From Podarcis melisellensis (lineage: Eukaryota), in assembly GCA_964234715.1 (NCBI GenBank), contig OZ174275.1: a stretch of 64,000 nucleotides of DNA; one strand, 5' to 3'. The translations under genes and the position numbers were made by a program. The notes under the pieces were generated by a model. The model saw only the letters and a list, made by a program, of their open reading frames with translations. It was not told the origin of the DNA and ran no database searches. Positions 12,843 to 48,601 of the stretch are shown piece after piece (positions within the stretch are counted from its first letter, which is position 1; the number at the start of each line of letters is the position of its first letter).

Positions 12843-12942
12843 CATTGCCAGCTGCCTGCCAATGTTCCCCATAGTTATTCCACCAGCAAAAAATATACAG
12901 GGTAACCAGGAACGCACATAAAGGAAGTCAGGAGATGTGTAT
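12843..12942 (-). CDS. INSIG2: INSIG2 coding exon 4: [33 protein letters not shown]
   Basis: Acceptor ctctctag|A, donor ATG|GTAAGT; 100 nt; matches INSIG2. Confidence 0.98.
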
Positions 12943-13804
12943 CTAGAGAGAGATAAAGAGTCATGGTTAGGCATGAAAGAATGCACAAAGAAACAGGAAA
13001 CCTCCGACACTCTGACGCTGTCGCCTGGGCTCAAGACTGCACTGGTACAAGTAACAGCTTGTACTAATGCATCCGACACAGTCCCGTTTCTGAAAAACGA
13101 GGCACAGCCTGCTCACTGTGCATTGAAGCTTTGCAAAAAGACCCATAAGCAGCACTGTGCTGCAGTGGCTGGGACACCAGCCCTTGCCCAGCAGAGCTGA
13201 TGGCAGATCTTCCATTGGAATCAGCATGGCACCTTAGACCCAGCCCACAATGTCAGAATCGGGCACTGGAAGTCAAGCAAAAGCTTGAAGCCAGGCCCCT
13301 GACCCCATGCTGCACCTCCATGTAACGCCAGGCTTCCTTCCCTAGTTCCAAGTTTGAGATTGGAAAGGTAGCAATAGGGTTGTTGTTTTGGCCCTAGGTG
13401 CTATGGCTAAGCTGCTCATAGGTCATTGGCAATGCAGCTGCCAAAACACCCCAAAGCTTTTCCCTTGGCCTTGTAAGCTGGGAAGAGGGCAGACATCTGC
13501 TGCAAGGTTGGGAACCCAAGTGTGGGGTCCTGCTTGTGGTCCTGCTGCTTGAACACCTCTCCCCTATTTCTTCTTTTAAAACAGAGCAGGCAGGTGTAGA
13601 AGCACACAGTCCCAAAGCCGAAAGGACAGGCCCATGCAAATCCCTGCACCTCTGGTGCAATCTTGCACACCATCCATTCTGATGGGATTGATGCACGCTG
13701 GGCAAGGAGTCGGAATAGTTTTTAGTATTTCATCGGCACCAACCCCTGATACCTCTTCTAATATCCTAGCATTACAATCGCCATACTGAAGAGAAAACAC
13801 TTAC

Positions 13805-13971
13805 TGATAAACTCCATTGTAGACGAGAAGCTGAGTCACCAATGTGGCAAGAAATGCAATTCCTATTCCCAGGCCGAAGCCACTTCGAGATCGATCAAAC
13901 GTCCACCACAGCCCAATTGAAAGTGCAGCAAGTGTGAGGGACAACTGGATGTTGTTGGCAAAATCCACTTT
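13805..13971 (-). CDS. INSIG2: INSIG2 coding exon 3: [55 protein letters not shown](Q)
   Basis: Translated by hand (not in ORF track); acceptor ctcacag|AAA, donor CA|GTAAGT; 167 nt; conserved [10 protein letters not shown] motif. Confidence 0.98.
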
Positions 13972-14608: not shown

Positions 14609-14733
14609 AGCACTGGCATGATTTATACCAACAAAGACTGCTACACACCGCATCACACTGGACCATTCCCTCTTAAATTTGTGTGGCTCTCCCAGGTGTC
14701 GATCCATGCAGGGGTACAATAACCCAATCACAG
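14609..14733 (-). CDS. INSIG2: INSIG2 coding exon 2: (A)[41 protein letters not shown]
   Basis: Acceptor tttacag|CT, 125 nt, in frame with previous exon; ends at U12-type donor GTATCCTT. Confidence 0.98.
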
Positions 14734-15203
14734 CTGTAAATGACAACAACAAAAGGCGAAAGGAACAATTATGACTTCTGCCAAATTTGCCATTCGCTGA
14801 CGCTCCCTAAATTGGCTGATATCATACTGGTAACCATTCATTACATTACTAGTTAATTTTACGAAACGACATATTTTTTTATAACTTCCCGCAGATGAAA
14901 ACACGCTAGCAAACAAATTTCTGCCACTGCCCTTGCCTTCAGCCTTGTTGAATGCCCTCCAGATGCTTTGGACTAGAACTTCCATTAGCCCCAGGCAATG
15001 TGGGAAACCAATGTGCTGGTTTTGACCTGTGAAGCCTCATGCAGCTCACTCTCAAAGACCACCTGTCCCCACATGAACCAAGTCAAGACTGTGTTCATCA
15101 CCTGAGGCCCTTCTCCATGTGCACCCACTGAGAGAGGTGCAGAGGGTGGAAACAAAAAAATTCCTTCCAGTAGCACCTTAAAGACCAACTAAGTTAGTTC
15201 TTG

Positions 15204-15241
15204 GTATGAGCTTTCGTGTGCATGCACACTTCTTCAGATAC
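15204..15241 (-). ncRNA. Minimal type I hammerhead ribozyme motif (intact core; sense to INSIG2 pre-mRNA)
   Basis: Exact reverse complement of 15598-15635. Confidence 0.8.
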
Positions 15242-15420
15242 ACTGAAACAGAAGTCACCAGACCCTTCTATATAGTGAGAAGGTGGGGAGGGTATTACTC
15301 AGAAGGGTGGTGGGAATGGGTGATTGGCAGATAGCTGTGATGAGCCTGTTGACGACTCTTAACGACTGCAATAGGTCTTACAGGAAAAAGCAAGGGGTGA
15401 GAAGGTGAAAAATGGCTTTG

Positions 15421-15522
15421 TCATGTATAATGAGATAAGAATCCAATGTCTTTGTTCAGACCAGGTCTCTCCATGGTTTTAAGTTTGGTAATAAGTTGCA
15501 ATTCAGCAGCTTCTCTTTCCAT
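15421..15522 (-). pseudogene. Remnant C-terminus of a Penelope GIY-YIG endonuclease
   Basis: RE..E..LI.K..T...PGLN pattern typical of GIY-YIG domain ends; 5' truncated at the inversion junction. Confidence 0.7.
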
Positions 15523-15597
15523 TCCCACCACCCTTCTGAGTAATACCCCTGCCCACCTTCTCACTATATAGAAGGGTCTGGTAACTTCTGTTTCAGT

Positions 15598-15635
15598 GTA
15601 TCTGAAGAAGTGTGCATGCACACGAAAGCTCATAC
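15598..15635 (+). ncRNA. Minimal type I hammerhead ribozyme motif (intact core)
   Basis: GTAT-CTGAAGA-A-GTGTG(CATG)CACAC-GAAA-GCTC-ATAC: stem I GTAT/ATAC, CUGANGA and GAAA core, stem II, palindromic AGCT stem III, predicted cleavage after C15631. Confidence 0.8.
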
Positions 15636-15979
15636 CAAGAACTAACTTAGTTGGTCTTTAAGGTGCTACTGGAAGGAATTTTTTTGTTTTGACTATGGCA
15701 GACCAACACGGCTACCTATCTGTAACTGGAAGGGTGGAAACATGAAAGCAAGCCTTTTGACTGACAGCATCCTACTTGTGAAACTCTCCCCCAGAAGGCA
15801 TGCCTGGCACCACCACTATGTATTTTCAGGCACCAGACAAAAACATCTCTTTGAACCCAGGCTTTAGCCCCTTAATTTGGAGAGTATCAGCTATCTGTGG
15901 CCTCTTTTAGTGGGGTGGGGTGTTTGAGACCTATATAGGGATGTGTTTTTAGGTTCTCATTCTGTTTGGGTTCCTAATA

Positions 15980-16210
15980 CAGTGGTACCTTGGGTTACGA
16001 ACTTAATTCGTTCCGGAAGTCCGTTCTTAACCCGAAACCATTCTTAACCTGGGGTGCGCTTTCGCTAATGGGGCCTCCCACTGCTGCCAGCGCGATTTCC
16101 GTTCTCATCCTGGGGCAAAGTTCGCAACCCGAGGTACTATTTCTGGGTTAGTGGAGTTTGTAACCCAAAGAGTTTGTAACCTGAAGTGTTTGTGACCCGA
16201 GGTACCACTG
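15980..16210. mobile_element. Tc1/mariner MITE, copy 2
   Basis: Same TIRs, TA duplication on both sides. Confidence 0.85.
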
Positions 16211-17449
16211 TACCCGGTTTTAATGTTTGTACCATTTTTGCAAGTTGCTTCGAGTCACCTTTGTGGGGAAAGTGGCTAATGAAAGCAAACAACAACAGTG
16301 CGGGATGCTGGGAGCTGTACTCTAAACCTCCAGAGGGACCAGGGTGGAGAAGGATGGCAAAAGACAATCAAGCCAAGCAAATGCTTGTGTCTAGAATTGC
16401 CAATCTAGGTGTAAAATAAAAATGAAGCAAATGGTACGGTAAAATACTCAAGGATTTCAGGTGGGCAAAAAATAAATAAATAAAAAGGAAAGATGACAGG
16501 CAGGCAGTTTAGAGATAAAACGAGTCTCTAACTGTGACCAAAATATTCCAAGCGCGCACACACATGCCCCCGAGAAAAGAAAACCAACACATTCAGACAA
16601 TTTACACAGACAATTCCTTTCAAATCTGAATCCTCTGTAAAATCTGTGGTGTATTAATTCCATGAAAAGGTACAAAAGGAAAGTAATTAGATAATGCAAG
16701 ATACGTAGCCTTGAAGATTATCTTCAGCAGCAACAACAAAAACCTGTTTCCTAGACAATAGATCGGTTTATTGACCTGTATCAGAATCTGACAAGCAGCA
16801 CCTCAGGAAAATATTGGCATATTATGGGAGGTTTACTTACAATAGAACCTTCCCCTAGTGCTGCCCCCTGACTCCACTGCCAAGAGGCTTCCGCTGATAA
16901 AAAGATCTTATGCAGCAACGGAATTCATTAAAGTATTGGCTGAATCAGTGGTAGGGAGACTGGAAAGATATGTACCCTACCCTGCCACAGAATCTAGATG
17001 CCATTGTACTACAGAAGCCTTACCCAACCTGGGGTTCTCCAGATGTTTTGGGCTATAACTCTCATCAGCCCCCACCAGCAGTCTGGCTTACAGAAATTCC
17101 GCTCAATCAAAAGAATTCAGCAGATCATGCTACTTACTTAAGATCAGCATTGCCTTGCAAAATTTAAAAACATTTCTACCATAAATCAGATTTTCAAAAT
17201 AAATAAATTTGGACCACCAAATGGAAATTGAAATCAGATTTTTTTTATATAAAAAAATGAAGTTGGATCACTGAATGCAAACTGGCTGCCCATGACTGCT
17301 TTTTCTTTTCTAAACTGCAGCCAGAGGAGGGGAGGTGCAATCCTGACTGGGACTGTAGCTGAAGCAAAGTGTTGGCGTCCCCTCCGACCAGCCCTGGTCC
17401 AGATTAGCTAGGCCTCCCTCTCTGCCTAGGGCCAGTCATGTGGTTGATG

Positions 17450-18378: not shown

Positions 18379-18625
18379 CTGATGCTGTTCCACAGCAAAG
18401 CGGTACCCACCAAGCCGAAGAGAAGACGCTGGTGATCACATCTGGTGGGAACAAGGTGACGTTTCTCTGAATTTGTAGCAAGTTTAATACTAGAGCAAGA
18501 AAGACACCAATTAAAAAGAGGACTATCCCGCGGATCATCAAGTTCAGGCTGTGGCTGGTCACCGAGGAAATGTACGGACCGCACTTCTTTGGGATGGATG
18601 GCTGCGTATCATCGTCATCTGCCAT
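18379..18625 (-). CDS. INSIG2: INSIG2 coding exon 1 (gene exon 2): [23 protein letters not shown]...[13 protein letters not shown]
   Basis: Translation matches the vertebrate INSIG2 N-terminus ([46 protein letters not shown]). ATG in strong context (GCCATGG); donor TCAG|GTATGT at 18378; 247 nt, phase 1. Confidence 0.98.
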
Positions 18626-23903: not shown

Positions 23904-24124
23904 AATAAAAAAAAAATCCTTCCAGTAGCACCTTAGAGACCAACTATGTTTGTTATTGGTATGAGCTTTCATGTGCATGTACACTTCTTGTATCTAAAGA
24001 AGTGTGCATGCACACGAAAGCTCATACCAATAACAAACGTAGTTGGTCTTTAAGGTGCTACTCGAAGGAATTTTTTCATTTTGTTTTGACTACGGCAGAC
24101 CAACACAGCTACCTACCTGTAACT
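23904..24124. mobile_element. Penelope-like fold-back insertion B (older, diverged), in INSIG2 intron 1
   Basis: Same pLTR sequence in inverted arms meeting at 23989/23990; imperfect 13-bp TSD AGTTCTAAGACCA (23891-23903) / AGTTCTGGGACCA (24125-24137). Confidence 0.85.
23990..24027 (+). ncRNA. Degenerate hammerhead motif (core CTAAAGA)
   Basis: Identical to the copy A motif except G-to-A in the CUGANGA box. Confidence 0.65.
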
Positions 24125-38194: not shown

Positions 38195-38467
38195 CAAAAC
38201 AAAAAAAAATTCCTTCCAGTAGCACCTTAAAGACCAACTAAGTTAGTTCTTGGTATGAGCTTTCGTGTGCATGCACACTTCTTCAGATACACTTTTTTCC
38301 TTCCAGTAGCACCTTAAAGACCAACTAAGTTAGTTCTTGGTATGAGCTTTCGTGTGCATGCACACGAAAGCTCATACCAAGAACTAACTTAGTTGGTCTT
38401 TAAGGTGCTACTGGAAGGAATTTTTTTTGTTTTGACTATGGCAGACCAACACGGCTACCTATCTGTA
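38195..38467. mobile_element. Penelope-like fold-back insertion C (two tandem minus pLTR pieces plus one plus piece), nested in a hAT element
   Basis: Same pLTR; perfect 12-bp TSD GCTGTTTTTTGT (38183-38194 / 38468-38479); the host copy at 17450-17900 shows the empty site. Confidence 0.9.
38253..38290 (-). ncRNA. Minimal type I hammerhead ribozyme motif (intact core)
   Basis: Identical to 15204-15241. Confidence 0.8.
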
Positions 38468-47540: not shown

Positions 47541-47740
47541 NNNNNNNNNNNNNNNNNNNNNNNNNNNNNNNNNNNNNNNNNNNNNNNNNNNNNNNNNNNN
47601 NNNNNNNNNNNNNNNNNNNNNNNNNNNNNNNNNNNNNNNNNNNNNNNNNNNNNNNNNNNNNNNNNNNNNNNNNNNNNNNNNNNNNNNNNNNNNNNNNNNN
47701 NNNNNNNNNNNNNNNNNNNNNNNNNNNNNNNNNNNNNNNN
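47541..47740. other. Assembly gap (200 N)
   Basis: Run of N. Confidence 1.
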
Positions 47741-48469: not shown

Positions 48470-48601
48470 NNNNNNNNNNNNNNNNNNNNNNNNNNNNNNN
48501 NNNNNNNNNNNNNNNNNNNNNNNNNNNNNNNNNNNNNNNNNNNNNNNNNNNNNNNNNNNNNNNNNNNNNNNNNNNNNNNNNNNNNNNNNNNNNNNNNNNN
48601 N
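48470..48601. other. Assembly gap (132 N)
   Basis: Run of N. Confidence 1.

Follow-up and report, generated by a model that had tools for sequence, protein, structure and literature searches.

How does an intron of a protein-coding gene come to hold two hammerhead ribozyme motifs on opposite strands, and why is it tolerated there? The first-pass annotation had attributed the pair to a fold-back Penelope-like element (PLE) in an INSIG2 intron of the lizard Podarcis melisellensis and proposed that the fold-back silences its own ribozyme. We addressed both questions in the 64-kb window, the whole stretch of 64,000 nucleotides that was analysed. This window contains two runs of N, at 47541-47740 and 48470-48601. 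Our reading, to which we assign a probability of roughly 75%, is that positions 15154-15730 represent a single PLE insertion primed on both target strands, consisting of two head-to-head, 5'-truncated copies, with a motif that is inactive anyway, and residing in the intron as a neutral passenger.

The insertion lies in an intron of an INSIG2-like gene

Searching for INSIG exons one by one identified four on the minus strand with matches to Pfam INSIG, at 18380-18625, 14609-14734, 13804-13971 and 12843-12941. The first coding exon (18380-18625) also matched PDB entry 6m49, human INSIG2 (3e-39), and aligned to it from residue 4/5, as expected from the short INSIG2 N-terminus. The insertion is located in the 3.6-kb intron between this exon and the second coding exon (14609-14734; Pfam INSIG, 1.1e-8), ~420 nt upstream of the latter. 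The Pfam and 6m49 matches thus bear out the annotated intronic position in a minus-strand INSIG2-like gene. The label "intron 2" presumes a non-coding exon 1, presumably as in human INSIG2. Transcription proceeds towards lower coordinates and so reaches the antisense arm (15689 to 15519) before the sense motif (15241 to 15204), in the order that had been annotated.

Two head-to-head copies within one target-site duplication

A repeat search found the inverted sequence in two blocks, 15150-15292 with 15547-15689 (143 nt, 99%) and 15290-15319 with 15519-15548 (30 nt, 100%). In a global alignment, the left arm (15150-15319) and the right arm (15519-15689), which also pair with each other in the RNA fold, were identical at 168 of 171 positions and differed by two substitutions and one indel, matching the ~170-bp inverted arms described around the motif pair. 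Comparison of the flanks revealed a target-site duplication (TSD), AGGGTGGAAAC, at 15143-15153 on the left and at 15731-15741 on the right. The longest word common to both flanks is 12 nt (15143-15154 and 15731-15742), giving a TSD of 11-12 bp. Its last four bases, AAAC, read GTTT on the opposite strand, as in the element, which gives a 4-nt microhomology at the left (priming) junction. Since the whole unit is enclosed by only one pair of TSDs, we interpret the 577 bases at 15154-15730 as one insertion event.

Within this unit are a minus-sense, 5'-truncated PLE copy of 365 nt (15154-15518), which contains the end of an ORF, its stop codon, the 3' UTR and the hammerhead motif, and a plus-sense, 5'-truncated copy of 212 nt (15519-15730). 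The arms are the overlap of the two copies, and each copy also has private sequence: a 199-nt centre with the ORF end in the minus copy, and a tail of ~42 nt at the end of the plus copy. Two contigs from a metagenome assembly, L001 and L002, carry further copies of the same element. The 199-nt centre continues the minus-sense arm upstream and is colinear with both of these independent copies. Because L001 and L002 run colinearly from the ORF end into the 3' UTR, the apparent 199-nt loop is the upstream part of the minus copy. Comparison with the same contigs showed that the junction at 15518|15519 is head-to-head (5'-to-5'), with a 3-nt microhomology, TGG.

The two copies also differ in where they end. 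The minus-sense copy terminates at a T-run, the proximal start site, and lacks the tail. On the plus copy this proximal end point is marked by the end of the T-run at 15685, 54 nt past the predicted ribozyme cut, or by the end of the common GTTT at 15689, 58 nt past it. The distal end point lies at 15727-15730, 96-99 nt past the cut site, and the one-sided tail (15686-15730) occupies the interval between the two. The motif follows the stop codon by 180 nt and precedes the two end points by 54-58 and 96-99 nt.

An ORF end and an assignment to Penelope-like elements

The minus-sense copy retains the last 31 codons of an ORF (15424-15516, minus strand; REAAEL...GLNKD...HYT), followed by the stop codon TGA at 15421-15423. 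An exhaustive representative protein search with this 31-aa remnant returned two short fragments only, P0001 and P0002, both from the one metagenome assembly and encoded on L001 and L002; their C-termini are 84-94% identical to it. At the nucleotide level, L001 and L002 match the minus strand of 15154-15518 at ~90-95% identity over the ORF end and the 3' UTR; in L001 the colinearity extends through the hammerhead to the T-run.

The ORF end had been labelled a GIY-YIG remnant. Pfam found nothing on the 70-aa minus-strand ORF, nor on P0001 or P0002, and BLASTP of P0002 residues 33-86 against the C-terminus of EN from Poseidon_Ac, a PLE of the lizard Anolis carolinensis, gave no alignment at E<=100. 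A large protein word search with the same residues retrieved the query itself only, a cluster look-up of relatives yielded no named members, and the protein searches recovered no full-length element. In the protein atlas, the neighbours that have a name are eukaryotic GIY-YIG clusters, but their scores of 0.76-0.86 fall short of the reliability level of 0.9. By eye, P0002, in which 54 codons of the ORF are left, contains a pattern (PGH...RL.RE.AEL...LN) that is reminiscent of the end of Poseidon_Ac, which we treat as a lead only. The stretch at 15424-15516 is thus probably the C-terminus of an ORF, and the atlas neighbours weakly suggest that it is the end of a putative GIY-YIG endonuclease; neither Pfam nor BLASTP confirmed that label. 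There is no RT domain in the insertion, because its 5' truncation stops short of the RT region.

Membership among PLEs was judged from the structure of the insertion (tail, inverted truncated copy and TSD) and from where the hammerhead sits, not from protein domains. An adjacent inverted, 5'-truncated copy and a tail of 30-40 bp at one end are typical PLE anatomy (PMC8557442), and the tail has been described as unique to PLEs (PMC11167929). Together with the arms, these same features bear out the annotation of a fold-back PLE insertion.

The window contains two more insertions of this family. Copy B (23904-24124, plus strand) is a fold-back with a 7-nt loop, a G5 to A change in the hammerhead core and a degenerate TSD that, read by eye, comprises 13 bp with two mismatches; the longest exact word common to its flanks is 6 nt. 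Copy C (38195-38467, plus strand) is a three-piece fold-back with a 12-bp TSD, GCTGTTTTTTGT; it is loopless, and its axis lies inside the 14-nt palindromic helix II. All three family insertions in the window (3/3) are therefore inverted arrangements, each with its own TSD and a different breakpoint. L001 and L002 are inverted arrangements too, again with different breakpoints.

Origin of the inverted arrangement

In vitro, purified Poseidon_Ac protein cuts the two DNA strands and extends each of them (PMC11167929). It initiates at two internal sites, and the tail is the sequence between them (PMC11167929). Because Poseidon_Ac extends both strands, it offers an explanation for head-to-head copies, and the private sequence of each arm at 15154-15730 agrees with such two-strand, two-start extension by a lizard PLE. 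The spacing is comparable as well. With the Poseidon_Ac hammerhead cut at ~+26/30 and the tail at +85 to +119 (PMC11167929), the distances from cut to start are ~55-59 and 89-93 nt in that element and 54-58 and 96-99 nt here. That priming occurred on both strands is our inference from the anatomy of the insertion and from Poseidon_Ac, a single in vitro system in a different PLE family.

The element endonuclease would most likely have nicked both target strands ~11 bp apart, and each nicked 3' end would then have primed reverse transcription of element RNA. On the top strand, synthesis would have started at the proximal site, the T-run, and copied 365 nt, reaching into the ORF end. On the bottom strand, 212 nt would have been copied from a start at the distal site, whose position ~42 nt further on would account for the one-sided tail. 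The converging cDNAs would finally have been joined at the 3-nt microhomology. The 4-nt AAAC/GTTT match at the left junction may have aided priming.

Inverted repeats could also form when a cDNA folds back on itself or when the RT switches onto the nascent cDNA, producing a hairpin copy. Copies B, with its 7-nt loop, and C, loopless with its axis in helix II, resemble such snap-backs, and the palindrome would be an easy fold-back point. At 15154-15730, however, a self-copied hairpin could not yield the private 199 nt and the ~42-nt tail. A simple snap-back of one cDNA is excluded because each copy has sequence that is missing from the other, and we regard snap-back in its various forms as very unlikely. 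Two separate insertions, the second placed within or adjacent to the first and oriented the opposite way, would be in keeping with reports of PLEs integrating in or alongside existing copies (review PMC6765202). Yet one TSD pair encloses the whole unit, no internal TSD is present at 15518|15519, only 3 of 171 arm positions are mismatched, and the same architecture recurs in each of the three local insertions with a TSD of its own, making coincidence of two events extremely improbable. A template switch to a second RNA may have taken the place of priming on the second strand.

A minimal type-I hammerhead motif on each arm

A whole-window motif scan located the exact 38-nt motif at 15204-15241 (minus strand) and 15598-15635 (plus strand), precisely where two identical motifs on opposite strands had been annotated. 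A further exact copy is present at 38253-38290 (minus strand), and the copy at 23990-24027 (plus strand) has one mismatch, the G5 to A change in the core. The motif was found in none of 100 shuffled sequences (0/100). Each arm carries it because both element copies include the 3' UTR. The copy at 15204-15241 is in the sense orientation on the INSIG2 pre-mRNA, with predicted cleavage at 15208|15207, the annotated position, which agrees with the motif layout. The copy at 15598-15635 is antisense to INSIG2, with predicted cleavage at 15631|15632.

In its 5' part, the motif consists of helix I (GUAU/AUAC), the core CUGAAGA and an unpaired extra A 5' of helix II. Helix II (GUGUG-CAUG-CACAC) has the closing pair G10.1-C11.1 and is followed by G12 A13 A14, A15.1-G-C-U16.1, C17 and the cleavage site. 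Compared with the consensus C3 U4 G5 A6 N7 G8 A9 ... G12 A13 A14 A15.1 ... U16.1 H17, the catalytic core (CUGAAGA ... GAAA GC UC) is exact in both arms. Beyond the core, published hallmarks of PLE minimal hammerheads are an additional unpaired nucleotide 5' of helix II, the G10.1-C11.1 pair, a helix II that is long and an open helix I of just 4-5 bp (PMC4209133), as well as palindromic positions 15.2-16.2 (PMC4209133); all of these are found together in the 38-nt motif. By its sequence features, the motif thus belongs to the PLE minimal hammerhead class, as had been annotated for both arms, and it may be competent as a ribozyme.

The outcome with covariance models counts against this assignment, and covariation did not add to it. 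A scan of the 64 kb with a type-I descriptor gave three matches, all intact copies of the motif, and none in 100 shuffles; descriptor scans found no other hammerhead families in the window. The Rfam hammerhead models, which the first-pass annotation had put forward as a check, matched nothing in the whole window at the gathering score and nothing in 15100-15750 even at E<=10, where the sole Rfam match was a spurious one to MIR2118 (E 0.26) on the top of the hairpin. Such a miss would be expected, as the models require a helix III, which the motif lacks. Across six full motif copies (four in the window and two in locus L001), all nine pairs of helices I and II (9/9) are invariant and hence uninformative on covariation, and decayed copies have changes on one side of pairs only.

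The missing Rfam match and covariation could instead indicate that the motif is not a working ribozyme but a conserved palindromic 3' UTR hairpin for protein binding or priming, with a hammerhead-like core. Hammerhead mutants left in vitro insertion by Poseidon_Ac unaffected (PMC11167929), and PLE clades without hammerheads proliferate well (PMC8557442), which would suit such a role. Against it, all core positions co-occur with four PLE minimal hammerhead hallmarks that are not part of the descriptor, and the distance from motif to RT start is nearly that of the Poseidon_Ac hammerhead, which does cleave; a non-ribozyme hairpin is therefore unlikely in our view.

The hairpin is predicted to mask a motif that is probably silent anyway

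Folded as host-sense RNA, 15130-15750 is predicted to form a single long hairpin, with an MFE of -370.7 kcal/mol compared with -152 +/- 5 for shuffles. All 38 nt of the motif are paired to the antisense arm in this structure, the pair probability of helix I is ~1e-46, and a fold with helices I and II imposed is less favourable by +68.9 kcal/mol. The idea that the hairpin sequesters the ribozyme thus holds in silico, with a ddG of +69 kcal/mol and a fully paired motif. The sense arm alone, with the antisense arm absent, forms helix I with a probability of only 0.006. Helix III is formed by the palindrome AGCU (positions A-GC-U), whose 2-nt loop is unable to close it in cis. When two copies were cofolded, the 14-bp helix II duplex dominated. 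These predictions accord with published work: cleavage of minimal hammerhead monomers was undetectable and their dimers cleaved poorly (PMC4209133), and dimer cleavage of PLE hammerheads is credited to Lunse et al. 2016 in a passage of the review PMC6765202. The motif would be inactive anyway, because helix III needs a second sense copy (a dimer) and the motif probably also needs the element protein. We conclude that the ribozyme is probably silent in the INSIG2 intron with or without the hairpin.

This bears directly on the proposal that fold-back insertion, by sequestering an otherwise active ribozyme, makes intronic insertions tolerable. The orientation of the gene does put the antisense arm first, the predicted hairpin does pair the motif fully and reduce helix I to ~1e-46, and tandem retrozymes are mildly depleted from Xenopus introns (bioRxiv 10.64898/2026.07.22.740005). 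However, self-silencing is unneeded where the lone motif is already incompetent, with helix I at 0.006 and helix III open in cis, and where the transcript has no second sense copy nearby. Monomers remained uncleaved in vitro (PMC4209133), the Anolis PLE hammerhead requires its own protein, with no RNA-seq reads ending at the site (PMC11167929), and ~44% of Xenopus retrozyme copies are intronic, so that the depletion is modest (bioRxiv 10.64898/2026.07.22.740005). Moreover, the fold-back breakpoint of L002 is unrelated to the ribozyme, and neither copy B nor copy C is located within the coding part of the gene. Because breakpoints are unrelated to the ribozyme and B and C are so placed, the fold-backs appear to be a by-product of insertion rather than selected, and self-silencing as the reason for tolerance seems quite improbable. 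On the folding predictions, masking is real but would be unnecessary, a side effect of the insertion mode. The insertion is probably a neutral intronic passenger; the masking idea is physically true but not needed to explain its tolerance, and the insertion matters little on its own.

A candidate source of double-stranded RNA

What the insertion does leave in the INSIG2 intron is a near-perfect hairpin of 170 bp, which deserves an annotation flag because it could attract RNA editing or small-RNA processing. By analogy with flies, the hairpin is a plausible source of dsRNA in the INSIG2 pre-mRNA: siRNAs map precisely to the inverted regions of rearranged Penelope copies in Drosophila (PMC3681739). 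The wider proposition is that PLE fold-backs with private arms and a one-sided tail are the in vivo footprint of dual-strand TPRT begun at two sites, are retained in sense in introns over tandem copies, and are a major source of dsRNA in lizards; this we consider a long shot. Were it true, a sense hammerhead would always be paired with an antisense one, so that fold-backs would outlast tandem, dimer-competent sense copies in introns, and ADAR and Dicer would draw much of their intronic dsRNA in lizards from such fold-backs.

Comparison with known systems

The insertion has a counterpart in the twin priming of L1, which Ostertag and Kazazian reportedly set out in 2001, and in which both nicked strands are said to prime cDNA, the products being joined at microhomology to leave an inverted 5' part. 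In L1 twin priming, however, the two segments come from neighbouring stretches of one RNA and do not overlap, whereas here both cDNAs would begin close to the 3' end, so that 170 nt are common to the two and a hairpin results.

A close mechanistic parallel is Poseidon_Ac (Frangieh et al. 2024, PMC11167929), likewise a lizard PLE, from Anolis carolinensis, and of the same hammerhead architecture. In vitro cleavage by its hammerhead follows the expected C3/G8 genetics (PMC11167929), but the hammerhead sequence, CUGAGGA-U-GCCUGCC...GUGGGC-GAAA-CG-UC, has helices wholly different from those of the 38-nt motif. Poseidon_Ac is a different family, with a 3' UTR unrelated in sequence and ORF ends without BLASTP similarity. 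In Poseidon_Ac, helix II contains the start of the ORF; the ATG within helix II of our motif opens only nine codons. Its start sites also need no target homology, in contrast to the 4-nt microhomology at the left junction here.

Paired minimal hammerheads on opposite strands, 100-700 bp apart, were already reported in 2014 (PMC4209133). Compared with those motifs, helix II is here a perfect 14-nt palindrome (5 bp plus a CAUG hairpin). The reptile hosts in that survey were a turtle and snakes, lizards not being among those named. The inverted repeats of Drosophila Penelope (PMC3681739) resemble the present case in that inverted PLE repeats were both suggested and seen to give rise to dsRNA; that work concerned flies and the element's own transcripts, whereas in the lizard the hairpin would be part of an intronic host transcript.

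In its anatomy, the insertion corresponds to the complex PLE insertions described before (Craig et al. 2021, PMC8557442; Evgen'ev & Arkhipova 2005). Strong 5' truncation is common to both, and the adjacent inverted copy and one-sided tail of insertions with pseudo-LTRs (PMC8557442) are also found here. We see no substantial difference, except that the present case is very short, at 577 bp, and has no RT. The insertion at 15154-15730 therefore has the ordinary published PLE anatomy and is a new example rather than a new kind: a clean, young, TSD-bounded natural example with different private sequence on each arm.

Further fold-back copies in the window

Copy C, a third fold-back insertion of the same Penelope-like element (PLE) family, occupies 38195-38467 and is built from three pieces, which we describe along the minus strand. 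The first is an antisense copy with the tail, the one-sided extension of the element, and runs to an axis at 38359|38358 within helix II of the hammerhead motif. It is followed by a sense half-copy that terminates in GGAAGGAAAAAA at 38293, and then by a complete sense copy (38292->38195). Because of this layout, a half hammerhead (GAAAGCUC|AUAC) lies approximately 70 nt upstream of the full hammerhead on the same strand, where it could donate the substrate strand to a dimer-like active site.

The fold-back of copy B (23904-24124) is older and belongs to a slightly different subfamily, with a loop of 7 nt (GTATCTA) and a degenerate TSD, AGTTCT(AA/GG)GACCA. Its sense copy carries a G5->A change in the hammerhead core, and helix II of its antisense copy has two one-sided changes.

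Surroundings of the insertion at 15154-15730

Just downstream of the insertion is a 25-nt inverted repeat (15978-16002 / 16188-16212; 88% complementary, spacing 185 nt) that looks like the termini of a further small transposable element. At 15275-15559, Rfam gave a sub-threshold hit to plant MIR2118 (19.8 bits versus a gathering score of 85, E-value of 0.26), which was rejected as spurious, as it is produced by the top of the hairpin. The window contains two runs of N, at 47541-47740 (200 bases) and 48470-48601 (132 bases).

Metagenomic copies and a candidate ORF start

Two short contigs from ENA metagenome assembly ERZ27260045, L001 (1-598) and L002 (1-697), contain the vertebrate-type retroelement of the 15154-15730 insertion at about 90-95% identity and presumably represent host DNA in the sample. 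Both hold inverted arrangements, with 145-nt arms and a spacing of 285 nt in L001, and with 140-nt arms within the ORF-end region in L002, which also contains a 117-nt direct repeat.

In the tail of the insertion, at 15695-15730, we identified an ATG in good context (ACTATGGCAGACC...), whose frame is open up to the element end. Since the tail of the Anolis PLE Poseidon_Ac is situated within the first 119 nt of the ORF (PMC11167929), this ATG may, by analogy, be the ORF start of the family.
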